From positions 62,001-126,000 of the IMG/VR virus record IMGVR_UViG_3300032675_000001: DNA of 64,000 nucleotides; one strand, written 5' to 3'. Both the position numbers and the translations under genes were made by a program. The notes below the pieces were generated by a model that was not told the origin of the DNA, searched no databases, and saw only the letters and a list, made by a program, of their open reading frames with translations. Below, one piece after another: positions 9,880 through 52,799 of this stretch. How positions within the stretch are numbered: position 1 is the first letter of the stretch; every line of letters begins with the position of its first letter.

Positions 9880-10203
9880 TTAAGACCACCTCGTTAGAAA
9901 CCAAGTTTCTAACTCAGGACTCAGAACGTAGTTCAACGTGTAACCATTGTAACTCGCGTTCCCGTGATTCCACATATGAGGAGGCTGAGACTCTATCCAG
10001 TCTGAAATATTTCCTGTTTTGATAGTATATACGTTCCAGCCAGTTGGACCATGCGTTCCAGACTTTAACCATGGTAGAACCAAAGACTCTAGGATTTCCT
10101 CGTCAATAGTCTTTTGCAATTCTTGTGCCATAATAACTGCAAGTTCGTCTAATTCTTTCCGAGAAAGCCGCGAAAGCTGCACGTTAACTCCAAGTAAGCT
10201 CAT
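9880..10203 (-). CDS. Short protein of the F-x-L-R-W-S family
   Basis: Ends PELETWFLTRWS. Start moved to MSLLGV. Confidence 0.65.
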   Translation of the reverse strand: MSLLGVNVQLSRLSRKELDELAVIMAQELQKTIDEEILESLVLPWLKSGTHGPTGWNVYTIKTGNISDWIESQPPHMWNHGNASYNGYTLNYVLSPELETWFLTRWS

Positions 10204-10435
10204 AAAACAACGCCTCTTTAGGGTCTTCAAATGCAGGGAACTTTTTACCGAACAAATCGCTTGAAACAAGGCCATATCGTCCGATAAGCTTTTCTCTTAT
10301 CCATTCATCCGATTCTTGGGTTGTAGGCGTCTTAGTTCTAACGAAGTGCGCAGGAACGTGCTTCACCTCTCGTTCCATAAACCATTGATGTAGGTTTAAG
10401 TCATTCACGTTCTTCATTGTCTTTGACCAGTTCAT
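10184..10435 (-). CDS. Short protein of the F-x-L-R-W-S family
   Basis: Ends FEDPKEALFYELTWS. Confidence 0.7.
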   Translation of the reverse strand: MNWSKTMKNVNDLNLHQWFMEREVKHVPAHFVRTKTPTTQESDEWIREKLIGRYGLVSSDLFGKKFPAFEDPKEALFYELTWS

Positions 10436-29776: not shown

Positions 29777-29792
29777 ACAACATATCACCCGA

Positions 29793-37237: not shown

Positions 37238-37325
37238 GAAAATATTTATAGTCCCTGTTGGTGTGTAATAAATTTTATCTGATATTCCATTATACCATGG
37301 TATAATGCGCCGCGTTATTTAATAC

Positions 37326-38456
37326 TCAAATCAGCTTAGTGATAAAATTGGTTTGGTTCATGAGTGCGTTGTAGTTGAACTCGCATATTTCTCTTGCCTT
37401 ACTTAGAAAATCAGATAATTGGTCTTGATTTAACTCGCATAATCGTTTTGTTTCATTCAGTATCATCATGAGACGCTTATCGTCATTTTCTTCCGTGTCA
37501 TAGCTTTCATCAATGATGTCATCAAAGGTTTTATAACCAATACTACGCAATGCTCTTAGTGTATGAGGACGAGTAATAACAATGAACGGATGCTTTTTCA
37601 GTATGGGCTTGAATATCTTCTCCGATACAAACACACCTTCTCCTCTGTGCTTGAAAAAGTTTGTCTCAGATACAATGCTGAAATAGCTATTTGCATAGTA
37701 ATAATCGGTTGAATCTGTCATTGTTGCCTGATTGATGTGCAGGTCTTTTGTGTCCAAATACATGGGCGGAAGGCTTTCATATTCTTCACGTCTAGTATAA
37801 AGCGTGTTTAATAGTTCTTCATCGTTTATACACCATAGAAAGGAATCTGCTGCTCTTTCCCATGATGCGCCGTCCACACCAGCAGCCAAACTCACAAATC
37901 CCTGATTTAATAATCCATGTAGCTGCAACAATGCCACAAACATTATGCGATGTTCTCTCCATCGTCTATTGAGATTGAGAAACTTTTTCTCATAGTGTTT
38001 GTCTTCAAGAGTAGCCAACTGTTGGTGCTGTGTCTGTTTAAGATTGTATTCAAACATTCTCAGCCATTCCACATTGATCGTGTCCTGATTGTATAGCGAG
38101 GCAACTCTCTTGACTTCCTGATCAATAATTGCCGATTCACTGAGTAATACTATATGCTTTGGTGGTATTCCCAATCCTATGACATAATGCTGATATATGC
38201 TGTCTACAACATCATGAAACGCTTCATGTGAATTATTTAAACACAGTGTTATTCTACCATTACGCATGTCTTCTATGGCAGTCTTGTCCATACGTGCTAT
38301 AGATTGATTCAAATATTCCCCATGGTGGAAATCAATATACCAATAATCAGTGTCGTTAAAGTCTCTTATATAGAATAGAGAACTGTTTGGACGAAGTTCT
38401 GGACCAGTACTACTATAATAATATATGGTATTGACAATAGACACTATTTCATCCAT
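37326..38456 (-). CDS. Putative GT-B glycosyltransferase (TET/SEK family), paralog 2
   Basis: SIVSET...SEKIFKP...HPF...GYKTF..DESYD. Confidence 0.6.
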   Translation of the reverse strand: MDEIVSIVNTIYYYSSTGPELRPNSSLFYIRDFNDTDYWYIDFHHGEYLNQSIARMDKTAIEDMRNGRITLCLNNSHEAFHDVVDSIYQHYVIGLGIPPKHIVLLSESAIIDQEVKRVASLYNQDTINVEWLRMFEYNLKQTQHQQLATLEDKHYEKKFLNLNRRWREHRIMFVALLQLHGLLNQGFVSLAAGVDGASWERAADSFLWCINDEELLNTLYTRREEYESLPPMYLDTKDLHINQATMTDSTDYYYANSYFSIVSETNFFKHRGEGVFVSEKIFKPILKKHPFIVITRPHTLRALRSIGYKTFDDIIDESYDTEENDDKRLMMILNETKRLCELNQDQLSDFLSKAREICEFNYNALMNQTNFITKLI

Positions 38457-39511
38457 CCCATTTTTCTGTAGTACTGCAATGTATATTCTGTTAGTTTTTT
38501 AACATGACCATGCATCGTATAATCGGTTCCATCAGTGAGGAACTTAAGAGATGTTGGTACCATCTTGTCTTTGTTCAAACCAAAGTCAATCATGCGCTGT
38601 CTATTACGTATCATTTTTGGTAACAAGGTTTCATGCATTTGATCACGATAATCATTATTGTATATCTGGACTATGCGTTCAATGTTGTCTACTAACCCAT
38701 TGATTCTATCCTTTACGTTCGGCATCGTGTCAAAACTATAATCAAACAGTTCATCATACAGTTCCAGACCGTACATGTTTGCCAAGTAGTCTGTGTGGTA
38801 ACCAGCACTACATAGAGCGATAAACGGCTTCAACTGTGCGATACTTTTTATTGTTTTCTCAGTTAGAAAGAACTCTTCTGGTTCAACATGACTTTCAGAT
38901 ACTAGATCAATAAATCCTCTGGTAAAGCTTGCGGGAATGGAACCGGCGTTAAACTCTGGTTTGGAATTCAACTCAAAATCTTGCTCATCCAACAATCGTG
39001 AACCATCGTGATATTTCCATCCCAGAAACGGTTCACTTTTCATTGAAAATGATACTCTCTCGGGATATATAAAGGTCACAATCCCATGTTGAAGGAGGCT
39101 TCTTTTTACTAGCTCATCAACCAGTAATGCTCTTTCATACTTTGGATTGTTATTATAACTAGTGAATACTTTATCCGCTTTAAGATGAGTATTCAGTGTG
39201 TCAGGTGCTGATATGCCCTTGTACAGTAAATCAACAAAGAATATATAGATACCAGAGGTAGATTCTGTTACGATATTTGGAGTAATTTGCAAGTTATTTG
39301 GATTTGGAACTAGCACAGTTACGGTTTTATTATTTTCTTCTAACCATGGTTGTATATTATTAAAGAAGTGTTTGAAAATAAATCTAAAGTCATATTCTTC
39401 CAAACACAAACAAAGAATTCTGTCTGGGTTGAGTTCTTTGATTTCATTTATTTCCTGTTCCCATTGATAGTTATTGGCATGATACAAATGGTGAACAATA
39501 TATACGTTCAT
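38444..39511 (-). CDS. Putative GT-B glycosyltransferase (TET/SEK family), paralog 3
   Basis: LVSES...LTEKTIK...PF...DYSFD. ATGA-coupled start. Confidence 0.55.
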   Translation of the reverse strand: MNVYIVHHLYHANNYQWEQEINEIKELNPDRILCLCLEEYDFRFIFKHFFNNIQPWLEENNKTVTVLVPNPNNLQITPNIVTESTSGIYIFFVDLLYKGISAPDTLNTHLKADKVFTSYNNNPKYERALLVDELVKRSLLQHGIVTFIYPERVSFSMKSEPFLGWKYHDGSRLLDEQDFELNSKPEFNAGSIPASFTRGFIDLVSESHVEPEEFFLTEKTIKSIAQLKPFIALCSAGYHTDYLANMYGLELYDELFDYSFDTMPNVKDRINGLVDNIERIVQIYNNDYRDQMHETLLPKMIRNRQRMIDFGLNKDKMVPTSLKFLTDGTDYTMHGHVKKLTEYTLQYYRKMGWMK

Positions 39512-40488
39512 TGATCTTCGTTCCCCTGTACTATTTGTTGTGAAATCCATTGATAGGTTTTGATCAAACCTGTTTCTAAATCTTCGTCAGGACTCCATCC
39601 CAATACTTCTTGAATAAGCTTATTATCAGAGTTGCGTCCCATCACTCCTACAGGACCGTCTATATTCTTGACTGTGACTGACTTATTAGTGAGACTTGCA
39701 ATCAGCATGACAAGATCATTTATACTAATCATGCGTTCGGAGCCTAGGTTTAATGGCTTGTCATATTCTCCGTCCATGATGCGATGAATGCCCTCAATGC
39801 ACTCATCGATGTACAGAAACGATCTTGTTTGTGTTCCCGGTCCCCATACTTCAATCTCGCCATTGTGGTCGCACAATGCGACCTTACGACATAATGCGGC
39901 TGGTGCCTTTTCCTTACCGTTATTCCATGATCCTTGAGGACCAAATATATTGTGAAATCTTGCGATACGAACGTCTATATTATAGTTCTTTGCATATGTC
40001 ATATACAGGCGTTCACTGAATAGTTTCTCCCATCCATATTCAGAATCTGGATTGGCAGGATATGCGCTGTCTTCAGATAGTAGAGGATTATTAGGATCAA
40101 TCTGATTATGTTCCGGATAGATACATGCAGACGAAGAATAAAAAACTTTCTTAACACAGTGTTCTTTCATTGCATCAAGGATGTTCAGATTAATACTTAC
40201 AGAGTTGTGCATAATATCAGCATCATGTTCGCCTGTAAAGATGTATCCTGCTCCACCCATATCTGCGGCAAGCTGGTAGACTTCATCAAACTGATATAAT
40301 CTAAAGATTGTATTAACACTGTTAATGTCACGTAAGTCTATAATGTGAAAATTGTCACACGATGTTTCAGAATAAAGTGGATGTTTTAAATCAACTCCTA
40401 TTACTTTGTGTCCCTGTGCCTTGAGACTTGCAGCCAAATGTGAACCAATAAATCCGCCTGCACCACAGACTAATACTTTTTTAGTCAT
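39508..40488 (-). CDS. NAD-dependent epimerase, GDP-mannose 3,5-epimerase-like
   Basis: GAGGFIG, LAADMGG.G, SSACIYP, YGWEK, EKAPAA.CRK and QTRSFLY motifs. Confidence 0.9.
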   Translation of the reverse strand: MTKKVLVCGAGGFIGSHLAASLKAQGHKVIGVDLKHPLYSETSCDNFHIIDLRDINSVNTIFRLYQFDEVYQLAADMGGAGYIFTGEHDADIMHNSVSINLNILDAMKEHCVKKVFYSSSACIYPEHNQIDPNNPLLSEDSAYPANPDSEYGWEKLFSERLYMTYAKNYNIDVRIARFHNIFGPQGSWNNGKEKAPAALCRKVALCDHNGEIEVWGPGTQTRSFLYIDECIEGIHRIMDGEYDKPLNLGSERMISINDLVMLIASLTNKSVTVKNIDGPVGVMGRNSDNKLIQEVLGWSPDEDLETGLIKTYQWISQQIVQGNEDQ

Positions 40489-41810
40489 GGTATATTCTTT
40501 CTGAATATGTTTGTCATTTTATCTACGATTAACTTTGGACTTGCATTCTTTACCAGATGATAGTTATGCTCTAAGATGGGCTTCACTCTGCGTCTAAAGT
40601 CAATAATCTGTTCTGGCGTCCATTGCCCAATCTGAGCCGTCACAGCAGCAAGTCTGCGCATTCTTTCATGTGGATCATGGCAGGTGTCATAGCTTTCATC
40701 CCAGAACTCTGAGAACGTTTTAAACCCCAAATCTTGCAATCCTCTAAGAGCGCCATTAACACCCACTGTGATAAATGGATGCTTTTCTTTTGCTGGTTTA
40801 AATGACTTTTCGGTTAATGTTACTTCTGCTTCATAGAAGTTTGTTTCTGTTACAATACTAACAAGACTGCTTTGATAGTATGGGCGAGATGCATTTGCAC
40901 GATCTTCACACATTCTATTAATATCAGTTTCGTTATCAAGTATTAATGGAAGCCTAGACTGAAACCTGTTAATATCGTCTATCTTGATTCCGTACTGGTT
41001 ATCCAGTAACGTCTGATCAACCCTATGATGGAACTTAATAGATGGTGTTTCAATGTCATGTCCACTAAAGCTTATTAGGCTTCGGTCAATCAGATTATTC
41101 TTTTCCAGATTTAATGCCATCTCAACACGATGCTGGCGAAATCTTCTATTCCACATTAGAAACAGCTTCTCAGGAACAGTGTCAGTATTATACTCTGGTT
41201 CCTCATTGTTTTCAGAATATTCTGTGCTGAACACATGCATTGCAGATGCATATGGAACTATAGTCAGACGATGTTCTGGTGTATTTGGTATATTGTTTCT
41301 AGAACAGTAACTGTCGTATATTTCCTGCCCATTAATACAGCCTGTCAAATATAATATCTTATGCAGAGGAATATTGTGAATATCTTTAAAGTAACCATGC
41401 ATTGCAGTAATGTGATTATCTTGAATAAATGCCTCGGCAAAATGATTAATCAGAATGTAACCATTGGCATTTCTTACTCTTTCAACCAAATGCCATGGAA
41501 TATGAGCAAACTCCAATATTCCAGTATTGCCTAGAAAATAATGTTCAAACTGTATGCGCCATACTAGCGTGAACGGTATAACAAATGGTCTGGTATCATT
41601 ATTGGCGATGGAGACGGCTGGATAGATTTCATAATCATCTTGAGCATAACGGAACATTCTTGTCCATGCATCATCTCCCCACCATTTTAGAGAACTGATT
41701 TCTTTAACACCCTCAGCCACTCCTGCAAGGCTTAATACATTTGGTAACTCGGTATTCCAAATAGGACCTCTTGGGCCTATCCAGCTATAAACAACTTTGA
41801 TTTTTTCCAT
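40485..41810 (-). CDS. Putative GT-B glycosyltransferase (TET/SEK family), paralog 4
   Basis: SIVTET...LTEKSFKP...HPF...GFKTF..DESYD. Confidence 0.6.
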   Translation of the reverse strand: MEKIKVVYSWIGPRGPIWNTELPNVLSLAGVAEGVKEISSLKWWGDDAWTRMFRYAQDDYEIYPAVSIANNDTRPFVIPFTLVWRIQFEHYFLGNTGILEFAHIPWHLVERVRNANGYILINHFAEAFIQDNHITAMHGYFKDIHNIPLHKILYLTGCINGQEIYDSYCSRNNIPNTPEHRLTIVPYASAMHVFSTEYSENNEEPEYNTDTVPEKLFLMWNRRFRQHRVEMALNLEKNNLIDRSLISFSGHDIETPSIKFHHRVDQTLLDNQYGIKIDDINRFQSRLPLILDNETDINRMCEDRANASRPYYQSSLVSIVTETNFYEAEVTLTEKSFKPAKEKHPFITVGVNGALRGLQDLGFKTFSEFWDESYDTCHDPHERMRRLAAVTAQIGQWTPEQIIDFRRRVKPILEHNYHLVKNASPKLIVDKMTNIFRKNIP

Positions 41811-41814
41811 GCCA

Positions 41815-42792
41815 TTATTTATCGACCTTATATTTAGGTATGATAATATCTGTGCCACAGTGGCAATGATCTTTAAAGCATGTGATTTCTTGTGGACCCA
41901 CTTTGCTTACATCTTCCAATATATGACCAACGCGGTCTCCTTGTCCACAACTTGCCAGACTAATCTCTCCCACAGGATTAATAAAAATGGCGTCTCCTAC
42001 TTGACACTTCCAATGTTTAAAAAAGTTCTGACCATTCACAATAATGTCATTTGAGTTGGTGGGATAAGAGAATGATTCGTTATCTCCACGATAACGATTA
42101 TAACTGACAGTTCTATGTGTGCGTTTATTTGGCTTTGGTTTTGTCTGTTGGATTTCAATATTGTGCTGTTTTAGAAAGTCAGACTTCTTTTGGTCTTTAT
42201 ATTCCCATGGGCTTGCATTAATACTGAGTTCATCAAAAAGTGGTGTCCATTCTAAGAAATAGTTAGGCATTACCTTTTTTAATTCTTCTGCATACTCTAC
42301 GATTTCCCAGAATCGTTCCTCGTGCATGAGCATCTTAGTAGAAAGGTAGTTTACCTTTTCGCATAGATAAATGGAATTCTCCTTGTAGCGTTCCTTGTTA
42401 GTGAACTCTACATGAAAGGACGCAACGATGTCATCAAACAGATAGGCATGTTTTTCCCACCATGCCAGTGGGCGAGAAAGATTCGTATTCACGGCCAAAG
42501 TAGCAAATGGAAGTTCCTTGTAAATCCATTCACAGATGGGAATAAAGTTACGCCATGCTGTAGGCTCACCACCAGAGAAAAAGAACTTGAAGTTTTTGTA
42601 ACCCTTTTCCTTGTATTTGTTGATGATTGTCTCTAGGTTGGCAAGATAGATATCTAGATTGCCATTGTTTGGGCTTGTGCCACCCCAGTTGCCGGGGTTG
42701 CAATAACTGCATCGGAAGTTACAGAAGTTAGAGACTTGCCATGTGATCGCAAGATATGGTTCTGGTGCTTCAATGGCAATAAGTTCTCTCAT
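41815..42792 (-). CDS. Radical SAM protein with C-terminal Twitch/SPASM
   Basis: CNFRCSYC, SGGEP and C-terminal C...C...C.C motifs. Confidence 0.9.
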   Translation of the reverse strand: MRELIAIEAPEPYLAITWQVSNFCNFRCSYCNPGNWGGTSPNNGNLDIYLANLETIINKYKEKGYKNFKFFFSGGEPTAWRNFIPICEWIYKELPFATLAVNTNLSRPLAWWEKHAYLFDDIVASFHVEFTNKERYKENSIYLCEKVNYLSTKMLMHEERFWEIVEYAEELKKVMPNYFLEWTPLFDELSINASPWEYKDQKKSDFLKQHNIEIQQTKPKPNKRTHRTVSYNRYRGDNESFSYPTNSNDIIVNGQNFFKHWKCQVGDAIFINPVGEISLASCGQGDRVGHILEDVSKVGPQEITCFKDHCHCGTDIIIPKYKVDK

Positions 42793-43094
42793 AATGTCTC
42801 TTCTATATATTTCTTTAGTTCTTTTAAAGTGGTATCGTAATCTTCTACTACACCGATCATGCTGTTTTTGACTTTAGGTTCAATGACTACAGTATAACAA
42901 CAGTTGTTATTGGTGGTCCATCTGAATACTCGGTTATAAATCCATCGTTCACTGTAAGTTGGTTCACCGAAAAAGCCTTTATATCCCGAAATGAAACCAT
43001 ATGACTTGTAATCATTAGCATTAGGATGAAAATCAAGCTGCTCCAGCTTTTTGAGATTATATAACTTCTTCAAGAAATATAACATGTCAGACAT
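42789..43094 (-). CDS. Hypothetical protein
   Basis: Coupled ORF; start uncertain. Confidence 0.6.
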   Translation of the reverse strand: MSDMLYFLKKLYNLKKLEQLDFHPNANDYKSYGFISGYKGFFGEPTYSERWIYNRVFRWTTNNNCCYTVVIEPKVKNSMIGVVEDYDTTLKELKKYIEETL

Positions 43095-44368
43095 TAACTT
43101 GCTGCCCATTCATAGACTTCTTTAATCTCTGGTACAATGTCTTCAAACTTCTCGTTACGAAACTGATCCAACTCATCATTGAACTGCTTGAACTCCAAAA
43201 TGCCGCCCTTGTTCTCATCACCTACGTTGAGGTTATAGATGATCATCTTGAAGCCGTTAAAGATGTCTACATTGTCCTTATACTTTTCCTGATACACACG
43301 GTAAAGTTCAGTGAGCCTACGCTTTACGTGGTTTGGCAGAATCATGATATTTGCATACCATGGATTAGTAGCCAGATTAAATCTAGGACTGGTCTTGGTA
43401 TCAATAAAACCATTGTCAATCATATAATCAAAAAAGTCTGCAAAGTGAAAGATGTTCCATATGGAAATAGTAGGTGTAATCTGAAACTGAACGTGTGGCA
43501 GTTCTTCCTTCAACTTCTTCATATTCTTGATAGTGCGGTCCCAGTCAGTTCCTTTACGCATACATTCAGCAAGAGCACCATGAGCATCAAGTGATGCCCA
43601 TACCTGAATGTTCTTGAACTTCTTCCAGTATTCAATCAAGTCTTTGTTCTTATAGCCATGTAGCGTAGAGAAGTTTGTAGTATAGTTTAACTCAATACTA
43701 TCTGCTTGACCCGATTCAATCCAATAATCAAGACATTCATAGTGTTCTGGTGTAATAATGATTTCACCACCAGCAAAATATACTTCCGTAACATCAGCAA
43801 GATATGGCTTTAACTTGACCATGAACTGTTGGTCTTCGTTATTATTAACAACTACTTTCTGACCGGGGAAATATTCATCCCACATTTCCTTGCCACGCTT
43901 GTCCAGAAACTCTTGTGCCCACTGTGATGAGCATGATGGACCACATGAGCGGCACTTCATGTTACAGAGGTTACTGAACCGAATATCCATATACTTCATT
44001 TCAAACTCAGATAGCGAACCATCTTCGTTTGTGTTTTCTGCAATATAGTTAACGTAGTCAAGACCTCTGCGACGATTATGAGACTGTCTCATCGTCCATG
44101 TGCCCATAAGTTCCAAGTCAAAGCAACGCTTACACTCTGGAACTTCCTCATCATTAAGCATTGCCTTACGAATCTCATTGTAACGATCACTGTTCATCAT
44201 TTCAATGATAGACTGATCTGGATCAATCTGTGCCACTGGCATATTACTATCAGCAACACAGCAAGGCATTACTCTTGAATCAGGCCATGCATGAAAGTGC
44301 ACCCATGGCAGAACACAAAAGTGCTTACCGTTGCATACCAGATTCTCAACTACGTTTTTATCAGCCAT
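43094..44368 (-). CDS. Radical SAM protein with N-terminal Twitch-like cluster
   Basis: FCVLPW.H...PCC, CNMKCRSC and AGGE motifs. Confidence 0.92.
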   Translation of the reverse strand: MADKNVVENLVCNGKHFCVLPWVHFHAWPDSRVMPCCVADSNMPVAQIDPDQSIIEMMNSDRYNEIRKAMLNDEEVPECKRCFDLELMGTWTMRQSHNRRRGLDYVNYIAENTNEDGSLSEFEMKYMDIRFSNLCNMKCRSCGPSCSSQWAQEFLDKRGKEMWDEYFPGQKVVVNNNEDQQFMVKLKPYLADVTEVYFAGGEIIITPEHYECLDYWIESGQADSIELNYTTNFSTLHGYKNKDLIEYWKKFKNIQVWASLDAHGALAECMRKGTDWDRTIKNMKKLKEELPHVQFQITPTISIWNIFHFADFFDYMIDNGFIDTKTSPRFNLATNPWYANIMILPNHVKRRLTELYRVYQEKYKDNVDIFNGFKMIIYNLNVGDENKGGILEFKQFNDELDQFRNEKFEDIVPEIKEVYEWAAS

Positions 44369-44612
44369 TTGCTTCTTCTGTTTCCGAAACTCTTTTATAA
44401 GTTACAATATTATTGAGAATATTCTTAATCTTGATTTCAATGCTGTTGTCTTCATCATCAAGAGTTACTTGTGCAGCAGCATCACTGCCAAATGATCTGA
44501 TAATATCACTCATTACCGCATCACATGTTTCCTGAGTTAGAGGCTCAAACATATACTTGTCAAGAATAGCGTTAATCTCTTTATCCATTGCTTCATTAAT
44601 ATCAAATGTCAT
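44361..44612 (-). CDS. Hypothetical protein
   Basis: Coupled ORF. Confidence 0.65.
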   Translation of the reverse strand: MTFDINEAMDKEINAILDKYMFEPLTQETCDAVMSDIIRSFGSDAAAQVTLDDEDNSIEIKIKNILNNIVTYKRVSETEEANG

Positions 44613-44613
44613 A

Positions 44614-45153
44614 TTACTTTCCCTGTTTCAACTTTTGAATTTCACTCAGTAACTGTTTATATTCTGCTTCTTTCTTTGCATGTTCTTTTGCCATAACAGT
44701 CAACTCGTCACGAAGTTTTTTAGATTTTTTTAAGAAGCTGTTATCATCTGTTGTTTTGCTCGTTGGAAGCTTAACTACACACGGTGTGCTAATCTTCATG
44801 GCATGATTGCGAATACGTGCTGCCAGATGTTCTAGTTTTGTTGCCAGCCAATCATAAAAACGCACACGCAAGCAATCATTCTTTTCGGTAATTTGTTGCA
44901 AACGATCAATCAAAGTGCGATTGTCCTTTGCATCTTTTAAGATTTTAATTTTGTCACGAAGACGCTGAATGGCATTAGCCGATGCTATTACACTTTTAAG
45001 TGCGGCTGCTCGTTCATCTGTATCTGGATTGTCCTGACCATCAATTTCTTTTACAATTGCACAGTATTTGTTATGGACCGATACTGCCGCCTGTAATTCT
45101 TCTTCAAGAACTGGCAAATCAGATACATTGTATTCTTCTATTAATATTCCCAT
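44614..45153 (-). CDS. Hypothetical coiled-coil protein
   Basis: Abutting ORF. Confidence 0.7.
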   Translation of the reverse strand: MGILIEEYNVSDLPVLEEELQAAVSVHNKYCAIVKEIDGQDNPDTDERAAALKSVIASANAIQRLRDKIKILKDAKDNRTLIDRLQQITEKNDCLRVRFYDWLATKLEHLAARIRNHAMKISTPCVVKLPTSKTTDDNSFLKKSKKLRDELTVMAKEHAKKEAEYKQLLSEIQKLKQGK

Positions 45154-45154
45154 A

Positions 45155-46387
45155 TCATTTCTCCAAATCTCTCAGTTTACTTAGTTCAGGGAAGACAGAC
45201 CAAAAGTTTTCGTCTCTGATTCTATCTATAGAACGAGTGTGCTGTAGGAACGTTTCCTTTACTTTAGCCCAATCATCACTGTCTGATGCAAAGTTGACAG
45301 CATCGGTAATAAGTCTTGACAATGATGTTCCATCACCTTCGTTGGCTGTTGCCCATGCCAATGCTTTCTTGGCGGCTTCATCCTTAAGTTCACGAGGTAA
45401 TGATTTGGCACAGTAATAGTTAGGATGAACTGCAAGATAGAGTGAGTGATACCAATCTTCTCTACGAACTATTCCCTTGTCCTTTAGGTATTGATAAAAC
45501 TCACCAATGGTGCTATAGTTAAAAATGCTAAACACCGTGTTCATTTGAAATACTACCTGCTCAAGGTCACGAAAAATGAGGAGGTTTTCCTCTACTTTAC
45601 CCCAATCAGTTCCCTTGCGCAACCATTCTGCACGTTCGCCATAATGATCTATTGAGCAAGATAGTTCCACTCTCTTAAAGTGTTTCCACAGTTCAAGGAC
45701 ATCATGCTTTTTATACTTGATATTGCTTGCGTTTGTGTTGTATCTTAATGTGATATCGGTGCGACCTTTGCGAATCATTTCCTCAAGCATCGTATAATGC
45801 TCGTCGGTGATCAGTGGTTCGCCGCCTGCAAAATATGCAAGGTCAATATTTTCCACTTGATCAAGTGCTTCTTGCAGTAGATTACCCTTGGGATCAGCAT
45901 GAATAACAATAGGATGATTTGGGTCATAGTTCTTCTGCATCTCTGCACCCCACTGTGAGCTAAACTCTGAGCCACAGGTTCTGCATTTAAAGTTACATAT
46001 GTTGGAGAAACGAATGTCAAAATAGTGCATCTTAAAATCAGGCACGGTGCCATCATCCAGAGTGGTCGGAACGATTTCGTCAAACCGTGATGCAAACTGC
46101 TCTTTACTGTAGTTTCTGAATGAGTGTGGTCCAGCTTCCTCATGCTTATAGCAAAAGTCGCAAATCTTAGATTTGCGACCATTAAGCATATCAAGGCGAA
46201 GCGCCTTCATCTTCTCATTATTGAATGCTTCTTTGAGGGAAGTCTCTTTGGTATTACCAAATGGTTCAGTATAGTTGTTTGAACAGCAAGGATAGATATC
46301 ACCTTTAGGCGTCACGTTTAAGTGAAGCCATGGAAACATGCAGAACTCTTTGCTTTCGTTTAACAGGTAATCTTTATCTAAATCCAT
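45155..46387 (-). CDS. Radical SAM protein with N-terminal Twitch-like cluster
   Basis: FCMFPWLH...PCC, CNFKCRTC and AGGEP motifs. Paralog of 43094..44368. Confidence 0.92.
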   Translation of the reverse strand: MDLDKDYLLNESKEFCMFPWLHLNVTPKGDIYPCCSNNYTEPFGNTKETSLKEAFNNEKMKALRLDMLNGRKSKICDFCYKHEEAGPHSFRNYSKEQFASRFDEIVPTTLDDGTVPDFKMHYFDIRFSNICNFKCRTCGSEFSSQWGAEMQKNYDPNHPIVIHADPKGNLLQEALDQVENIDLAYFAGGEPLITDEHYTMLEEMIRKGRTDITLRYNTNASNIKYKKHDVLELWKHFKRVELSCSIDHYGERAEWLRKGTDWGKVEENLLIFRDLEQVVFQMNTVFSIFNYSTIGEFYQYLKDKGIVRREDWYHSLYLAVHPNYYCAKSLPRELKDEAAKKALAWATANEGDGTSLSRLITDAVNFASDSDDWAKVKETFLQHTRSIDRIRDENFWSVFPELSKLRDLEK

Positions 46388-46446
46388 TAACTTTCCCTTA
46401 TAAGACTATATTATATAGCACGATAAAAGGGAGTGCCAATGTTTTA

Positions 46447-46644
46447 TTACGATTCCCGAATCACATCAAATATGTCACCCCATTCAATGACAATCTCGTA
46501 CTGTGCGTGTTGATATTTCCGCACTACCCTACAATATGATGGTTTAAACGGGTAGACAATCTTTCCGCTTACAGTACGATGGAACCACTTTGGCTTCATG
46601 GGCATCCAATCCTGAATGACTACCGGATCAAAAAAGTTTTTCAT
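46447..46644 (-). CDS. Hypothetical protein
   Basis: Short ORF loosely similar to 47634..47855. Confidence 0.55.
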   Translation of the reverse strand: MKNFFDPVVIQDWMPMKPKWFHRTVSGKIVYPFKPSYCRVVRKYQHAQYEIVIEWGDIFDVIRES

Positions 46645-46690
46645 AAAATTTCGCGCTAATCTACTTAGGTGTGTAAGTCATAAAAATCAG

Positions 46691-46734
46691 CATCTTAGTC
46701 CCCCATCATAAATACGTGATAGGAGACTAAGATG
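46691..46734. promoter_or_regulatory. Long hairpin with late-promoter motif at the loop and RBS/ATG in the 3' arm
   Basis: CATCTTAGTCCCCCATCA-TAAATACG-TGATAGGAGACTAAGATG. Confidence 0.7.
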
Positions 46735-46890
46735 ACACTTGATGAATTTAATGAAGAATGGCGCGCGCTGACAGAGGATGAAATTGAAGCGCTTGGTGGG
46801 CTACGGAAGCGGATATTCATTCTGGACCCCGCAATATACCTTCAACAAACTCTTCGTATTCTTGCAGATCATGGAATTGATATACATTGA
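46732..46890 (+). CDS. Small antisense-oriented protein (52 aa)
   Basis: Not in the track. ATAAATA at 46708..46714 and AGGAG RBS precede MTLDEFNEEWRALTEDEIEALGGLRKRIFILDPAIYLQQTLRILADHGIDIH*. Confidence 0.6.
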   Translation: MTLDEFNEEWRALTEDEIEALGGLRKRIFILDPAIYLQQTLRILADHGIDIH

Positions 46891-46983
46891 CAATGGATTG
46901 CTTTTCCATTTGATGTCTTCGTTTAACGCCCTACCACCAAAAACAAACATTAAATCATCAGAAATACTAGTCGGAATGTTCAT
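46801..46983 (-). CDS. Hypothetical protein
   Basis: ATGA-coupled to the upstream LRWS gene; overlaps the + strand ORF. Confidence 0.4.
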   Translation of the reverse strand: MNIPTSISDDLMFVFGGRALNEDIKWKSNPLSMYINSMICKNTKSLLKVYCGVQNEYPLP

Positions 46984-47180
46984 GACCACCTCAACGTAAA
47001 CAGAGTGGCATCTTTTGGATCACCGAACCAAAACTCATAGATTATGTCTATTGACAGGCTGACATCAGACATATCTGTTTCTCTGTACCGACTATAACTG
47101 ACACAATGTTTTTTAGCCCAAAAAATCAACTCTAGAGTGGTAGCATCCGGATCAAACAGTTCTACTTTTGTTAACTCCAT
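46980..47180 (-). CDS. F-x-L-R-W-S family protein
   Basis: Ends FGDPKDATLFTLRWS. Confidence 0.75.
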   Translation of the reverse strand: MELTKVELFDPDATTLELIFWAKKHCVSYSRYRETDMSDVSLSIDIIYEFWFGDPKDATLFTLRWS

Positions 47181-47641
47181 CTTAGACTAAACCACGTATA
47201 GTCAGACTCTTCCTTGAAGGCGAAAAACATTACATCGCCGCCGCCGATTTCATTAAACTCAAAGTTATCTTGGTTATCCCACAGCCCACGAAGCCAATCG
47301 TTTCTCCACTTACCTTGACAATTCTGTTCGCACCAGTCTGCCATTTGGTCTATGACATCAAAATTAAAGGCAGTATTTGTAATACGCGGAACGTTTAATG
47401 CATGATTAGCAGTGCTAGGACGCAGTTGTGTAAAGCTATAGTAGATATAGTGTTTATCAGGTACTGACCATATGAACTTATAACCGTGATAGTATGTGTG
47501 TGCCCAACGAGCCATTGGGCCAATATCAGAGTCATATCTGCGCTCATATTCACGCCAAGTTTTACAGCCATGAGTTTCTAGAAAGCGTTTTTCACGCCAT
47601 CCTGTCCATCGCGTTTTTAATTCTTTTATAGGATTATTCAT
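47171..47641 (-). CDS. F-x-L-R-W-S family protein
   Basis: WCEQN; ends FKEESDYTWFSLRWS. Confidence 0.8.
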   Translation of the reverse strand: MNNPIKELKTRWTGWREKRFLETHGCKTWREYERRYDSDIGPMARWAHTYYHGYKFIWSVPDKHYIYYSFTQLRPSTANHALNVPRITNTAFNFDVIDQMADWCEQNCQGKWRNDWLRGLWDNQDNFEFNEIGGGDVMFFAFKEESDYTWFSLRWS

Positions 47642-47855
47642 CTCGTAAAACTTTCAGCATGTATTCTTTTTGAGAGAGCCATATATTGCCAATATACCCG
47701 TAATCAGTGCTACGTATCCCTTTGTAGGCTGTTCTTAGGAACAACAACTTGTTACTACGATTGCATCTGGTAAAGAGCCATAAAACTCTGCGTTTCACCC
47801 AAGTCCATCTCACTCTCATAGAACGGTCAATATCTTTATCCCAGTAAAAAGCCAT
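47634..47855 (-). CDS. Hypothetical protein in the LRWS array
   Basis: Ends WLSQKEYMLKVLRDE. Confidence 0.65.
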   Translation of the reverse strand: MAFYWDKDIDRSMRVRWTWVKRRVLWLFTRCNRSNKLLFLRTAYKGIRSTDYGYIGNIWLSQKEYMLKVLRDE

Positions 47856-47858
47856 TAG

Positions 47859-48047
47859 TTATCCCCACCTCAACTTAAACCATATTGCATCTTCTTCGCT
47901 CTGAAACCGTATGCCTTCTCTACCGTCTATACTACTTCCAACAGTCCATCGTTGTGGTTCCGGCAACGGTGGGTTTGGCATCTTTTCATCTAACCAGTCG
48001 CCAGCTTCTACTAACACTTTTAAGGGGACTTCAATATCAATACTCAC
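47859..48047 (-). CDS. F-x-L-R-W-S family protein
   Basis: GTGA-coupled start; ends FQSEEDAIWFKLRWG. Confidence 0.75.
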   Translation of the reverse strand: MSIDIEVPLKVLVEAGDWLDEKMPNPPLPEPQRWTVGSSIDGREGIRFQSEEDAIWFKLRWG

Positions 48048-48403
48048 GACCACCTCAACATAAACCAAGAAACATCCTTCTCATTCTTGAGAAAGACATA
48101 GTATACTCCCGTATACCAATCGCCCTGTTTTAAGTTCTGTTCGCACCATTCACGTATTACGTAATAGTCCTGTGGATCAATCTCAGAATACCATCCTCCG
48201 TCTCGTTCTTCTACCCACTGATTCTTGTCAAGAATGATACCAAGATCATCGGTCCAGCGCGACCAATGCCACGCTGGATTGCCACGTTCGTAGCGAAACT
48301 TTGGCTTGATCCTTTCTGGTGAAACTATATGCCATGCAGCATTCAGTTTTCTAGTTTTAGCAGTCACTGTTGTCTTTATAATATCAAACTTAATATCAGT
48401 CAT
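48044..48403 (-). CDS. F-x-L-R-W-S family protein
   Basis: WCEQN; ends NEKDVSWFMLRWS. Confidence 0.8.
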   Translation of the reverse strand: MTDIKFDIIKTTVTAKTRKLNAAWHIVSPERIKPKFRYERGNPAWHWSRWTDDLGIILDKNQWVEERDGGWYSEIDPQDYYVIREWCEQNLKQGDWYTGVYYVFLKNEKDVSWFMLRWS

Positions 48404-48618
48404 GTTTCCCTCAAGATAAACCAAACATAATCTTCTTCACGATCAAAAACAATGTGTACTTGACCTTCCCGAATCGTGATCTTTTGATCATACGTATCGT
48501 TCCAATGACATACCCATGCACGGTAAAAAACCCCCTCCGTATTAATAATCTTGTCGAACCTATTACGGAACCATTCAGGTTGCTGATTATGATCCTTCGG
48601 GACTTTGTAGTAATACAT
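48400..48618 (-). CDS. F-x-L-R-W-S family protein
   Basis: TAATG-coupled; ends FDREEDYVWFILRET. Confidence 0.75.
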   Translation of the reverse strand: MYYYKVPKDHNQQPEWFRNRFDKIINTEGVFYRAWVCHWNDTYDQKITIREGQVHIVFDREEDYVWFILRET

Positions 48619-48935
48619 TATGACCACCTCAATGTCAAATAGACCCAAGCCTTTTCAGCATCAGCATATCGTTTGAATATCATAGAACGATGCCCATAGT
48701 CTTCTCCACCAAACGATTTCATGATTGCCAGTGCATCATTTAGTACCTCAGTAAAATCAATGCTAAATTTAACAGCAATAACCCACTTGTTCTTGTGGCC
48801 ACCTGTCTTGCGTTGCACCCTCTTACGATAGAGCATAAAATGATTGTTTTGTAGCTCTACTGGTCTATAAATGTCAAGCGTCACATTCTTCAACAGACGG
48901 GAAAGCATTTCTTGCCCTGAAATAGTTTTAGTCAT
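48618..48935 (-). CDS. F-x-L-R-W-S family protein
   Basis: ATGA-coupled; ends DAEKAWVYLTLRWS. Confidence 0.75.
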   Translation of the reverse strand: MTKTISGQEMLSRLLKNVTLDIYRPVELQNNHFMLYRKRVQRKTGGHKNKWVIAVKFSIDFTEVLNDALAIMKSFGGEDYGHRSMIFKRYADAEKAWVYLTLRWS

Positions 48936-49213
48936 GACCACCTCAACAGAAACAAAATCATGTCGCGTTCATCGGTGAACTCGTAATAGTCATCCCAGTT
49001 GTTGTATGTCGCATTGTATTTTGATGCCATATCTGCGTTCCACTTAACCCAATGCATATATACACTACGACTGTCAGTTGGAGCAATGGCTTGATGCTCT
49101 TTGGAGATGTTATAAAACCATTGCTTCCGCACCGTGCGGCTGGCATCATCATGGACATATAGACGCAGATTATCCCTTGTTACATGGGATTCATTAGGTT
49201 CACTTCTTGACAT
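48932..49213 (-). CDS. F-x-L-R-W-S family protein
   Basis: Ends FTDERDMILFLLRWS. Confidence 0.75.
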   Translation of the reverse strand: MSRSEPNESHVTRDNLRLYVHDDASRTVRKQWFYNISKEHQAIAPTDSRSVYMHWVKWNADMASKYNATYNNWDDYYEFTDERDMILFLLRWS

Positions 49214-50577
49214 AAGCGGTAGAAATCCAACATCTCAGGGTACACGGTTAACAAGTCCGTCTCACGACGATCATCAATCTCATTGAACCAGTTGTAGAAA
49301 TCTCTACGTCCTTCAATGAGCTTCTGATCGCTATACACCGTTTCCGCCATATAGTCAACAACTCTTTTGAACTTTTCATACTCGATAGTAGAGAAAGCAT
49401 CGGCGCGGTCATCATCAAGGTTGTCTTCCATAAACTTCAATGACTCGCACATATATGGCATGAACTCATCCTTGGGAAGAATGTTCATGTCATACTGAAT
49501 CGGATCACGAAGATATGGAGTGTCAAAACGAATGATGTGCTGCTTGCGCTCTTCATCCCATCCATACTGCTTACGCCATTCAAGAAACTTCTCTAGAAGA
49601 CTCTTGAAGCTTGTCACACTGAAAATATTAAATGTGATCATGAATGTGATAGGAGACTGTGCCTTGCTTACATAGGTGTGGAAGTTCTTTTCCCACACAT
49701 CTAGGTCTAGTCCAGTGCGAATATACTCCGCACGTTCTCCCCATGTATCCATTGAAGTGAACAGCTTGAATGCTCTGATTTTACCTTCATCCTGTAGCTT
49801 TCGGACTTTGGTTGCAAGGCGATCAATCAGAATATTCTTCGTGCCTAGGTTTGAGTTAATGTTTAGTTCCAACCATGGCATTGGGTCTTCATCAATCTTG
49901 TCTAGCAGTTGCCATGTAGACTTGTGAAGAGTTGGTTCTCCGCCTGTGACACGCATGATGTTTAATGTTTGTCTCAGTTCAGGCCACCATTCCCAGAATG
50001 CATCAACATATGGGTTTTCTTCTTCACGTTGATAAAGTTTCATCCAGTCAATATCGCAGCGATGGTTCTTGACACTTGTTACCGGACCAAAATCTTCAAT
50101 CTCTTTGAAGTAGCGAGTTGAGTATTTTGGATGACAGTATCCGCATTTGAAATTGCATTCGTTGCCAAAGTTTATTTCCAAGTATTCCGGATTGATATTC
50201 TGATTCCAAGCACCCTTTGCTGTCTGTTCGTAACGTTCTTCTGTGAAGATAGAACTGTTGCGAATGTGTCGGTCAGAGATATAATCCTTACCCATTGCTT
50301 CCACGTTCCAGCAGTATTGACACCCTTTTGGCTTTTCTCCATTGAGCATCTGCTGACGCTCTAACTTCTTTTCAGTTGTATTGTGGAGAGCCGATGGATT
50401 ATCTTTTAGTTCACTCAATGGAATCTTGTGAGGAGCCGGGTGATAGCATGAATGCGTTTCCCCTGTCTGCAAGTAGATAGTCGTATGCATCCATTTTGCT
50501 AAACAGAAAGTCTTAGTAGAGTCAACGTCTATATAATCACGTATGCGTTTAATTCTGTCAACTTCGGATTCTTGCAT
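49180..50577 (-). CDS. Radical SAM protein with N-terminal Twitch-like cluster
   Basis: FCLAKW...SCYHP, C.YCW, CNFKCGYC and TGGEP motifs. Start moved to MQESEV. Confidence 0.92.
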   Translation of the reverse strand: MQESEVDRIKRIRDYIDVDSTKTFCLAKWMHTTIYLQTGETHSCYHPAPHKIPLSELKDNPSALHNTTEKKLERQQMLNGEKPKGCQYCWNVEAMGKDYISDRHIRNSSIFTEERYEQTAKGAWNQNINPEYLEINFGNECNFKCGYCHPKYSTRYFKEIEDFGPVTSVKNHRCDIDWMKLYQREEENPYVDAFWEWWPELRQTLNIMRVTGGEPTLHKSTWQLLDKIDEDPMPWLELNINSNLGTKNILIDRLATKVRKLQDEGKIRAFKLFTSMDTWGERAEYIRTGLDLDVWEKNFHTYVSKAQSPITFMITFNIFSVTSFKSLLEKFLEWRKQYGWDEERKQHIIRFDTPYLRDPIQYDMNILPKDEFMPYMCESLKFMEDNLDDDRADAFSTIEYEKFKRVVDYMAETVYSDQKLIEGRRDFYNWFNEIDDRRETDLLTVYPEMLDFYRLCQEVNLMNPM

Positions 50578-50594
50578 GGGCTTCTTTTCTGATG

Positions 50595-50662
50595 ATAAAT
50601 AGCTGTGAGTCGCGGAACAGACATTCCCACTCACTCTAACGCTATTAAGGAGCATCAGCATG
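50595..50662 (+). promoter_or_regulatory. Late promoter + conserved structured leader, copy A
   Basis: ATAAATA gct GTGAGT cgc GGAA cagaca TTCC c ACTCAC tctaac GCT attaagg AGC atcagc ATG. Confidence 0.8.
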
Positions 50663-51175
50663 ACTATTTACACTGGCAATAACTATCGGAAAATTTATAA
50701 ACAACACCATGGTCCTATCCCAAAAGATGAAAACGGGCGACGATACGACATTCATCATATTGATGGTGATCATACCAACAATCTCCCGGACAATCTGATT
50801 GCCATTCCAATTCAAGAACATTATGATATTCATTATGCCCAAAAAGATTATGGTGCATGTTTTCTCATAGCACCACGCCTAAAAATGTCAGCAAACGTAC
50901 TATCAGAACTAGCATCAAAACGCAATAAACAACAACTTGAAAATGGGACGCACGTTTTTCAAAGTGGTATGCAGACAAAAAACAATCTGATACGAAGTCA
51001 AAACGGAACTCATCCTTTTCTTGGCGGAAATGTTCAGCGTGATATGCACAGAAAAAATTTAGAAAACGGTACACATTTCGGTAAAATGGTGTGGACATGT
51101 CCACACTGCGGCAAGAACGGTAGGAATAAATCTAACTATACCAGATATCATGGCAGTAACTGTAAATCGCTGTAG
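50660..51175 (+). CDS. HNH homing endonuclease
   Basis: DIHHIDGDHTNNLPDNL...EHYDIH, NGTH repeats and a C-terminal CPHC..RYHG..C. Confidence 0.9.
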   Translation: MTIYTGNNYRKIYKQHHGPIPKDENGRRYDIHHIDGDHTNNLPDNLIAIPIQEHYDIHYAQKDYGACFLIAPRLKMSANVLSELASKRNKQQLENGTHVFQSGMQTKNNLIRSQNGTHPFLGGNVQRDMHRKNLENGTHFGKMVWTCPHCGKNGRNKSNYTRYHGSNCKSL

Positions 51176-51178
51176 TTT

Positions 51179-52126
51179 TCACCAGCCTTCTATCTTTCTA
51201 ATGACATCCATCTCTTTTACCAATGGACCCACGTTGTATTTGTCTGCGTTGTAGTGACGCTTGAAGAACTTGCTTTGTTCTTCTAAAAACATGCACATTG
51301 GTAGACCTAACTTATCTGCTAAGATATCTCCTACTATTTCCGCAGCGATGGTTGGATGCTTGTCTTTGTGAGATTCCCAAAGATTGTGAAAAGTATCAAA
51401 GTCGGATACTTCACGATAATCCCAGTCAGTGAGCATAGTCATCCATGTACCTAATCTTGCACCGTAAATAGCCCAGATACCATTCTCCACATCGGCACCA
51501 ACATTGTGCCAAATAGTGAGATTGTTCAGATTGCGTGATGCTACTCGCTCCTTAAAATCATCTATACTAGGCTTTGCACCACGATCCAGCACCATCTTGA
51601 CGCCTTCACGAAATCCTGCTCTCCACGCCTGAAAGGGAGTATAGTTAGGATATGTAGTAGAGTAGCAGTTCCACAAAGCCCAGTATAGACTATTGGTAGA
51701 ATCCATACAGAAGTCTACCGATGTTGAATCACTTCCATCAGTGTTTTCGTGGGTTTGCATAGTTGAAACATATGATTTTGTCCATGACGATATTCCTCCA
51801 TTTCCATAACGGAGACCATTGATATGATTAATGGCCTTCCACCTAAATTGTGCTAGTTTATACGAAGGGTCCAAATCAGTGAAGTCCAATTGGACATTAA
51901 AAAACTCCTCATGTGGCAAGTTATCCCCATCTATTACGAAAAAACGTTCGGTGTCGCTAGCTTCTCCTGCTGCTTTGTGGGCAGCGTCAGAACCCTTCAC
52001 ACCATCAACCCTCTTGGCCCATGGGCACATATTTTTTATCTTAAGCCAAAATTCTTCCTTAGATGGTTCATCATATGAAAGATAAATTACGTCACAATCT
52101 GCAACGTCTAAAATGTCTATACTCAT
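51179..52126 (-). CDS. Glycosyltransferase-A-like protein
   Basis: D.IYLSYDE, RVDGVKG..AAH.AA, VIDGD (DxD), NGLRYGNGG and AWRAGFREG motifs. Confidence 0.65.
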   Translation of the reverse strand: MSIDILDVADCDVIYLSYDEPSKEEFWLKIKNMCPWAKRVDGVKGSDAAHKAAGEASDTERFFVIDGDNLPHEEFFNVQLDFTDLDPSYKLAQFRWKAINHINGLRYGNGGISSWTKSYVSTMQTHENTDGSDSTSVDFCMDSTNSLYWALWNCYSTTYPNYTPFQAWRAGFREGVKMVLDRGAKPSIDDFKERVASRNLNNLTIWHNVGADVENGIWAIYGARLGTWMTMLTDWDYREVSDFDTFHNLWESHKDKHPTIAAEIVGDILADKLGLPMCMFLEEQSKFFKRHYNADKYNVGPLVKEMDVIRKIEGW

Positions 52127-52713
52127 GTAATATTCCTATTCTTACAACGAACGCCGTGCCATCTACTATACATCGGACTACTTACTGTCATGGAGCAATG
52201 CTCACATGTTTTCATTATTTTAGACGGATGCGTACCATCTTTTAATTGTTTTTTCGTTACGGCTCCACCTACTAAATTGTGCCTGTTCTCTTCAATTCTT
52301 TTTAAATTTTTCTGTTTAGCGTTTTCTGAGTTTTGCCACGGGTGCTTCCCTTCCATCACCTGTTTTAACGCTTTTTCTCGTTGGTGGTCACTATTCTGCC
52401 ATGGGTGAATGCCTCTTGCAACTTGACTTGCTGCATTCCTTTTTGCCAACTCTGACTTCTTTTCCTGAGATATATCCATACGCTTTGACAGGCTAAGACA
52501 TGCTGCCCAGTCTCCTTGAGAATAATGAATGTCATAATGTTCTTGTATGGATACTGCAATTAAATTTTCCGGAGAATTATTATGACTGTTTCCATCACGG
52601 TGATGAATATCATATGACCTTCCGTAATCATCCAGTGGAATAGGGCCATGAAACTTTTCGTATAATCGTCTGTAAAAGGTTGAAGATGTTCGTTTTCTAG
52701 AGTAAATAGACAT
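52123..52713 (-). CDS. HNH homing endonuclease, paralog of 50660..51175
   Basis: HGPIP.D..GRSYDIHHRDGNSHNNSPENL...QEHYDIHY, G.HPW repeats and CEHC..RWHG..C. Start moved to MSIYSR. Confidence 0.9.
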   Translation of the reverse strand: MSIYSRKRTSSTFYRRLYEKFHGPIPLDDYGRSYDIHHRDGNSHNNSPENLIAVSIQEHYDIHYSQGDWAACLSLSKRMDISQEKKSELAKRNAASQVARGIHPWQNSDHQREKALKQVMEGKHPWQNSENAKQKNLKRIEENRHNLVGGAVTKKQLKDGTHPSKIMKTCEHCSMTVSSPMYSRWHGVRCKNRNIT

Positions 52714-52779
52714 ACTGATGCTCTCCCAAGCGTTAGAGTAGTTGGGGATTCCAGTCCCGCGAACTACATCTTTATTTAT
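52711..52779 (-). promoter_or_regulatory. Late promoter + conserved structured leader, copy C
   Basis: ATAAATA aagat GTAGTT cgc GGGA ctggaa TCCC c AACTAC tctaac GCTT ggga GAGC atcagt ATG. Confidence 0.8.
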
Positions 52780-52799
52780 GTCTGACATCAACTATTTCA

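Follow-up and report, generated by a model that had tools for sequence, protein, structure and literature searches.

The subject of this report is an array of small genes in a 64,000-nucleotide stretch of viral DNA, hereafter the window, which corresponds to bases 62001-126000 of the IMG/VR record IMGVR_UViG_3300032675_000001. The record itself is 360,683 bp long, has direct terminal repeats and is judged complete. Near-identical DNA is present in at least 17 lake or freshwater metagenome runs and the source is, therefore, an uncultured freshwater jumbo phage; the window has a composition of approximately 40% G+C, with the majority of its genes on the minus strand. The array extends from 49213 to 46980 on the minus strand and consists of eight tightly packed small genes, designated g1 to g8 from the upstream end. 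Seven of the eight carry a C-terminal motif of the F-x-L-R-W-S type, a feature that an earlier note on this DNA had pointed out and that a reading of the ends of g1 to g8 confirms. Neither the DNA of the array, searched by blastn, nor two of the family proteins, searched by tblastn, has a match among 50,697 cultured-phage records.

The motif is spelled LRWS in g1, g2, g4, g7 and g8, LRWG in g5 and LRET in g3, and is lacking in g6. At the DNA level, TTGAGGTGG is found at five gene ends (46980, 47859, 48044, 48618 and 48932) and the shorter TTGAGG at a sixth (48400); at four of the five the sequence continues as TC(A/G)T(G/A)A, both counts being those given in the earlier note. The stop codon and the start that follows overlap as ATGA at 46980 and 48932, as GTGA at 48044 and as TAATG at 48618, and overlaps of 4 nt or 1 nt between co-directional genes can be read directly at 46980, 48044, 48400, 48618 and 48932. 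The junction constitutes a 19-nt direct repeat in five copies, and the 15-mer TTGAGGTGGTCRTRA is present nine times in the 360,683-bp genome, compared with no copy of the reversed control. It had been stated that each unit combines GAGGTG with an overlapping start; this holds at most junctions and fails at the end of g7, where the ATG lies inside the Arg-Trp codons (Table 1) and offers g8 its sole possible start. Neither promoter-like nor terminator-like sites were detected inside the array, at any junction, or between the upstream radical SAM gene and g1, and the next strong promoter-like site (46439-46410) lies ahead of the following radical SAM gene. The array is, most likely, a co-transcribed run of eight small genes and one terminal open reading frame (ORF). 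A scan of 44000-52000 against Rfam gave no match, and the T4-type late promoter TATAAATA is not enriched in the window and is absent from the array.

Table 1. Small genes, their junctions and associated features (window coordinates).
Feature	Coordinates	Strand	Description
Radical SAM gene	49180..50661	minus	same strand, directly upstream of g1
g1	48932..49213	minus	93 aa, family member, end ...FLLRWS; 34-nt overlap between the listed start (ATG) and the end of the radical SAM gene upstream
Junction g1-g2	48932..48946	minus	TTGAGGTGGTCATGA; GAGG 5 nt before the g2 ATG, which overlaps the TGA stop
g2	48618..48935	minus	105 aa, divergent family member, end ...YLTLRWS
Junction g2-g3	48618..48632	minus	TTGAGGTGGTCATAA followed by TG (TAATG overlap)
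g3	48400..48618	minus	72 aa, family member, end ...FILRET
Junction g3-g4	48400..48414	minus	TTGAGGGAAACATGA; GAGG retained despite the change of Trp-Ser to Glu-Thr; ATGA overlap
g4	48044..48403	minus	119 aa, family member with conserved N-terminal extension, end ...FMLRWS
Junction g4-g5	48044..48058	minus	TTGAGGTGGTCGTGA; GTG start overlapping the TGA stop
g5	47859..48047	minus	62 aa counted from the GTG start, family member, end ...FKLRWG
Junction g5-g6	47855..47873	minus	TTGAGGTGGGGATAA, CTA, then the g6 ATG
g6	47634..47855	minus	73 aa, outside the family; member of a second small family (starts MAFY/MAYW)
g7	47171..47641	minus	156 aa, N-terminal extension followed by the family domain at the C-terminus, end ...FSLRWS
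Junction g7-g8, second mode	47171..47185	minus	CTA AGA TGG AGT TAA; 10-nt overlap, without GAGG
g8	46980..47180	minus	66 aa, family member, end ...FTLRWS
Junction after g8	46980..46994	minus	TTGAGGTGGTCATGA; ATG of the last ORF overlapping the stop
Last ORF before terminator	46801..46983	minus	60 aa, coupled ATGA start at the end of g8, non-family, reality uncertain
Terminator-like hairpin	46691..46734	minus	18-bp stem, T-rich tail; closes the array transcription unit
Borderline remote copy	9880..10275	minus	end ...WFLTRWS (ACG AGG TGG TCT TAA); next gene approximately 56 nt away, no coupling geometry

The codons that spell the L-R-W-S end differ sharply from those used in the rest of the genome. 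In 319 long ORFs, taken as background, TTG represents 21.9% of Leu codons, AGG 7.6% of Arg codons and TCA plus TCG 33% of Ser codons. At the motif, Leu is encoded by TTG in 12 of 15 cases (P=2.8e-6 against a background of 0.219), Arg by AGG in 11 of 14 (P=1.3e-10 against 0.076) and Ser by TCA or TCG in eight of nine (P=9e-4). Elsewhere in the same genes codon usage is ordinary, with AGG at 5 of 46 Arg and TTG at 10 of 54 Leu positions, and the columns of the conserved Asp and Phe, which served as controls, exhibit no significant or comparable bias. The synonymous sites of L-R-W-S, which the earlier note had singled out for such a comparison, are thus under constraint. The paralogues are only 16-33% identical, yet alignable across approximately 60 residues, a divergence so large that shared descent is unable to explain identical synonymous sites. 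In the second array of this genome (locus L012), a family gene ends early, with ...LTLLHS-stop, approximately 19 nt being apparently inserted relative to the window paralogue g2, and the 15-mer TTGAGGTGGTCATGA follows the stop codon, out of frame and immediately ahead of the next ATG (L012:1648-1662, genome 297648-297662, minus strand); at that place the sequence can, therefore, have no role in the protein. A Chi-like role of GAGGTGG was also considered and was rejected, with 25 copies in the genome, 11 of them at junctions, compared with approximately 21 expected by chance from base composition and no excess outside the arrays.

The position of the junction relative to the following start is that of a ribosome-binding site (RBS). 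The Shine-Dalgarno (SD) type of this genome is AAGGAG, and GAGG ending 5 nt before ATG, the modal spacing at its long genes, is identical to the arrangement in TTGAGGTGGTC-ATG. Presumably, GAGGUGGUC pairs with the 3' end of bacterial 16S rRNA over nine positions, one of them a G-U pair. Beyond this genome, the degenerate pattern E-x-D-A-x-x-F-x-L-R-W-x-stop, in which the Leu and Arg codons were left free, retrieved 80 loci from IMG/VR, with 33-51% G+C and many of them on contigs of 100-520 kb. There are 347 profile hits in these 80 loci, so arrays are the rule. Among 296 canonical L-R-W-x-stop members, the Leu-Arg pair is spelled with GAGG in 175, with AAGG in 15, with AGA in 61 and with CGN in 27, Lys taking the place of Arg in the other 18; AGG accounts for approximately 68% of the motif Arg codons, whereas its background share of Arg codons, taken from the long ORFs of these loci, is 7.3%. 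The next ATG lies at -4 in 120 members of the GAGG class and at -1 in 26, and only nine of the 175 are without a nearby start. In the AGA class, an ORF of at least 40 aa begins at the ATG inside AGA-TGG in 45 of 61 cases. The choice of codon depends on the geometry: of 168 members with the next ATG at -4 or -1, 158 have SD-forming codons, as opposed to 19 of the 53 in which that start is distant or missing (Fisher odds ratio 28, P=8.5e-18). The overlapped downstream genes (n=243) are divided almost evenly between family (123) and non-family (120) genes; with approximately half of them unrelated to the family, the unit serves whatever follows it.

The second arrangement, seen in g7, recurs in a distant 304-kb contig of 31% G+C (L023), which has four members, none of them with GAGG. 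In L023:9063-10604 the next gene twice starts at an ATG within AAA-TGG or AGA-TGG (Lys/Arg-Trp); these starts were called independently by the gene caller of the source and constitute independent support for a second mode of dual coding. The effect is large and is linked to geometry, and both facts point to selection acting at the level of the mRNA. The earlier proposal of a dual-coding, self-coupling unit appears well supported by the non-random Leu and Arg codons, the modal spacing of GAGG and the dependence of codon on geometry over the 80 loci.

We consider it probable that the last codons of this family double as the RBS and start of the next gene, and that the locus is a coupled small-gene array of one virus-only domain family. 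In the mechanism that we propose, the last four codons and the stop would be written with rare codons, yielding the mRNA UUGAGGUGGUC-AUGA (or -GUGA, or -UAAUG). The GAGGUGGUC segment would pair with the 3' end of 16S rRNA and end five bases ahead of the start codon that overlaps the stop, and the ribosome ending one gene would be passed to the next by termination-reinitiation, fresh ribosomes being also able to load. In g7 and many relatives, a second solution, AGA-UGG, would serve, the Arg-Trp codons supplying the next AUG. Each family gene would in this manner be the carrier of a translation-initiation region for the gene downstream, approximately half of such genes being unrelated small genes. 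Both SD use and translational coupling are what the sequence suggests. Elsewhere, ATGA or TGATG overlaps with an intragenic SD are usually tightly coupled, and the SD often, albeit not always, matters (PMC6728339). The array has the same -4 ATGA/GTGA and -1 TAATG overlaps as the pairs described for termination-reinitiation coupling (Huber et al. 2019, PMC6728339), and in both the SD is located in the last codons of the upstream gene, with co-directional genes in one transcription unit. What sets the array apart is that the codons for the conserved C-terminal residues of a single family also form the SD and start, across hundreds of members, and that this family has two codings, GAGG plus ATG or AGA-TGG as ATG.

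The protein family was delineated with two profiles, one started from the last 45 residues and refined by iteration over this genome and a second, broad one built from the wider family. The in-genome profile recognizes 15 robust paralogues and a few borderline ones, clustered at 37.5-38.6, 109-111.2 (the window array), 223, 274, 279 and 297.2-299 kb of the genome, with further degenerate members in the second array. Within the window, g1, g3, g4, g5, g7 and g8 match the broad profile at E values of 2e-9 to 4e-13 (4e-6 for g3), g2 is recognized by the in-genome profile alone (E=1e-5) and g6 by neither. The three remote copies listed in the earlier note fare less well: the one at 9880 is borderline (E=0.0086 with the in-genome profile), and those at 10184 and 54128 are detected by neither profile. 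A search of 1.84 billion representatives with the profile of the 15 paralogues gave 728 matching clusters at E<=1e-3, nearly all of them 50-110 aa long and with the match extending to the last residue. An alignment of 129 sequences has the consensus WCxxNCxxxW...FxxExDAxxFxLRW, in which W33 and F64 are invariant and F55, D60, L66 and W68 nearly so. Exactly one residue follows the Trp in 296 of the 319 motif-bearing hits of the 80 viral loci, and likewise in six of the seven window members. AlphaFold, which gave a poor model with the 15 paralogues (pLDDT 62), reached a pLDDT of 92.3 with the 129-sequence alignment; the model has three short strands, a helix containing WCxxNC, two strands and a final helix that bears DAxxFxLRW. 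Because of this model and the pattern of conservation, the L-R-W motif is most likely part of the fold, namely the terminal helix of a compact domain of approximately 60 aa, rather than a docking tag. The N-termini, said earlier to differ widely, do so only in part: the whole domain is common to the members, and a few carry N-terminal extensions, each conserved in its own subfamily.

Neither the eight window genes nor ten distant relatives belong to any Pfam or PHROG family, a sequence profile search of the PDB gave no match, and the relatives are labelled 'hypothetical protein' in every source. The best structural neighbours are uncharacterized proteins of uncultured tailed phages, of Agrobacterium phage Atu_ph07 and of viral Atlas clusters. 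The family is virus-only, large and without a Pfam or PHROG model. Among solved structures, the matches are generic beta-alpha-beta-beta-alpha folds (KH, secretin N-domains) with Z of 5-6.1 and TM of approximately 0.5-0.6 (VIA-align). The order of core strands and helices is that of type I KH and secretin N-domains, whereas sequence similarity to either is lacking and the GXXG loop of type I KH domains is absent. A transfer of function from KH or secretin N-domains was dropped, such scores being typical of unrelated small folds according to the tool; assignment to the type I KH domains was likewise rejected, in the absence of a Pfam KH hit or a GXXG in the consensus and with a fold match of Z<=6.1. 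We infer that the proteins are accessory binders. One member stands apart in its location: a gene ending in ...FL(I/M)WKK lies directly after a dCMP deaminase gene (genome 273915-274283, L009:915-1283) and has a fixed place in every related contig examined (L021-L029, near position 10000), being positionally stable, unlike the array members.

The array could be compared with same-clade relatives, namely three viral contigs (L014-L016) and five metagenome contigs (L021, L022, L024, L026 and L027), and the same junction is borne by all eight. When the small genes are typed by similarity, the window, the second array and the eight contigs present differing sets and orders, such as M-N-H-E-.-A in the window, M-P-H-E-Q-R-O in L014, ...J-E-P-N-.-A-F in L015 and K-.-D-H-T-E in L027, and cassettes that are adjacent in relatives are divided between the two arrays of this genome. 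Compared with L014, identity is approximately 85% over the 3' half of g1 and through junction g1-g2 and then collapses, another family gene replacing g2; it returns, at approximately 92%, exactly at junction g2-g3, continues across g3 and g4 and collapses directly past g4-g5. Array content is, thus, not invariant between relatives, and homology breaks at junctions, two observations in keeping with the suggestion of the earlier note that modules are shuffled there by recombination. Co-occurring lake-phage contigs have junction-sized matches to the array, with loose ends at 46979/80, 47861, 48632 and 48932; no other DNA is conserved, and the limits of any match must therefore fall at the junction. 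In the assembled contigs of four runs, neither junction-to-junction deletions nor circle joints were seen. Recombination at the shared 15-24 nt junction is consistent with these data but unproven, and the identical 15-24 nt at every boundary may aid precise exchange of cassettes. The second small family, to which g6 belongs (MAFY/MAYW at the start, ...EY.ML.. at the end), follows an LRW gene in both arrays and most relatives (window 47634-47855; L012:1000-1212; L015:7134-7361; L016:6276-6500), as if it were the fixed right-hand frame of the array. A second patch of nucleotide identity between otherwise divergent paralogues is a 17-nt stretch, 94% identical between g7 (47322-47338) and g4 (48135-48151), which encodes W-C-E-Q-N of the first helix with codons that are the same in L014.

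Several points weigh against parts of this interpretation. Many of the 80 loci may come from a small number of related clades, and the counts taken from them do not represent phylogenetically independent events. In RNA folding, the unpaired share of the SD is 0.29, compared with 0.35 for shuffled flanks, which indicates no extra sequestration; because the SD is not hidden in folds, nothing favours strict coupling over free initiation. No SD is visible at junctions of the AGA-TGG type. Any model in which genes stay intact predicts breakpoints at their boundaries. Finally, TTG is preferred to CTG beyond the need of an SD, an excess that may reflect a further constraint or the copying of junctions.

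The last point leads to the strongest alternative, according to which the junction is primarily a recombination adaptor, comparable to the promoter-early stem-loop (PeSL) elements of phages or to integron sites, its identical 15-24 nt being kept by copying during exchange and its likeness to an SD being secondary. Such a reading accommodates the preference for TTG, the five-copy direct repeat, the variable sets and orders of cassettes among relatives, the breaks of homology with L014 within a few bases of three junctions, and the lake-phage contigs that match only junction pieces. A pure recombination site, however, does not predict that codon choice tracks the position of the next start, or that a sequence-unrelated solution, AGA-TGG, achieves the same translational end. 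Moreover, 15 nt is short for homologous recombination, the junction is accompanied by no recombinase, inverted repeat, promoter or terminator, and the joints of deletions or circles do not appear among the assembled contigs. On balance we regard this alternative as rather unlikely.

The two systems invoked are nevertheless instructive. In T4-type phages, PeSL cassettes consist of a repeated regulatory element that bounds swapped accessory genes (PMC2839356, PMC4122927). Like the junctions described here, PeSLs (Arbiol et al. 2010, PMC2839356; Comeau et al. 2014, PMC4122927) are short conserved elements that recur at the edges of small accessory genes within variable regions, bound the insertion, loss and replacement of whole genes between relatives, and also carry an expression signal. 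PeSLs, however, are intergenic and comprise an early, sigma-70-like promoter and a stem-loop terminator, whereas the junction is 15-24 nt long, lies in coding sequence and carries a translation signal instead of a transcription signal; neither a promoter nor a terminator is located at any junction, the sole strong hairpin coming after the array. Indels and replacements of cassettes in relatives end at the repeated element, as the three L014 breaks and the differing maps indicate; neither mini-circles nor exchange events were seen in the assembled contigs. Integron cassettes, with their attC sites, are likewise promoterless small genes in one orientation with a repeated 3' element, expressed from upstream. 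The junction is far shorter than attC and lacks its imperfect inverted repeat or hairpin; no integrase was detected among the neighbours scanned and no attC-type inverted repeat at the junctions.

Also doubtful, and more so, is the function that the earlier note had offered as an example, a library of anti-defence or host-range effectors in which variable N-terminal modules share a C-terminal docking motif. The family is virus-only, is encoded in variable arrays with a fast turnover and has N-terminal extensions on some members, all of which would suit effectors. Against this, the supposed docking motif is the final helix of a domain that is conserved over its full length, including W33, F64 and F55, no defence or anti-defence family was matched in Pfam or PHROGs (PADLOC was not searched), and no partner is known; nothing that we found bears on such roles.

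Still less probable is selection on the protein alone, in which case the shared codons would be functionless remnants of common descent or gene conversion. It is correct that L, R and W are conserved as residues also where other codons are used, and that Trp has a single codon. At the identity observed between paralogues, however, synonymous sites should be saturated; no bias is seen at the other Leu and Arg codons or in the control columns, the preponderance of AGG extends over the 80 loci, and a copy of the junction persists out of frame beyond a stop codon. The least tenable reading, that the small genes encode precursors of ribosomally synthesized and post-translationally modified peptides (RiPPs) for the adjoining radical SAM/SPASM enzymes, which would modify the conserved C-terminus as the core, was rejected: although the array is flanked by radical SAM/SPASM genes (45155-46387 and 49180-50661) and another two occur at 41815-44368, a globular domain is predicted with confidence, the called genes within approximately 5 kb have no radical SAM domain in L021, L022, L024, L026 and L027, where small genes surround the related arrays, and the local radical SAM genes belong to a sugar-nucleotide island with a UDP-glucose dehydrogenase, an epimerase and a carbamoyltransferase.

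This island of sugar-nucleotide and radical SAM genes extends over window positions 36014-50661 and is interrupted by the small-gene array. It contains a UDP-glucose dehydrogenase-like gene (36014-37237), an NAD epimerase/dehydratase gene (39508-40488) and the four radical SAM genes near the array (41815-42792, 43094-44368, 45155-46387 and 49180-50661), two of which have an N-terminal SPASM domain; the Nol-like carbamoyltransferase (28298-29788, PHROG E=3e-93) probably belongs to the same modification or glycan pathway. Just ahead of the terminator hairpin, a small ORF on the plus strand (46732-46890) overlaps the minus-strand ORF at 46801-46983. Upstream of the array, an HNH_3 endonuclease gene (52123-52791), which may be a homing element, is located amid small genes. 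Farther away in the window, a gene pair at 10672-13309 matches phrog_1314 (labelled HNH endonuclease) and phrog_1297 (ATPase), each at E~1e-100, and is overlapped by long antisense ORFs of 466 and 403 aa, and a 1645-aa ORF (23167-28104) adjoins an 851-aa protein (19712-22267) that has DNA methyltransferase matches at both ends.

The principles behind the finding, intragenic SD coupling and modular shuffling in the hyperplastic regions of phage genomes, are known. What the array adds is a statistically strong case of dual coding, in which one conserved stretch serves both as the end of a protein family and as the signal for translation of the adjacent gene, by two different routes, together with a large phage-only family without a database model, comprising hundreds of clusters and often several copies per genome. 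For jumbo phages, the arrangement packs accessory genes without intergenic space in a manner compatible with their exchange as whole units. More tentatively, and with less confidence than we place in the dual coding itself, the junction might be a universal adaptor, at once helix end, RBS, start codon and recombination microhomology, for a pool of small genes shared by freshwater jumbo phages, the cassettes of which would be swapped precisely, both within and between genomes, and translated on landing. Such an adaptor would be the equivalent, at the level of translation, of PeSLs and integron sites, placed inside coding sequence. If it is true that the junction guides recombination, this would explain how the accessory gene sets of these phages are reshuffled and would offer a natural design for self-coupling synthetic operons.

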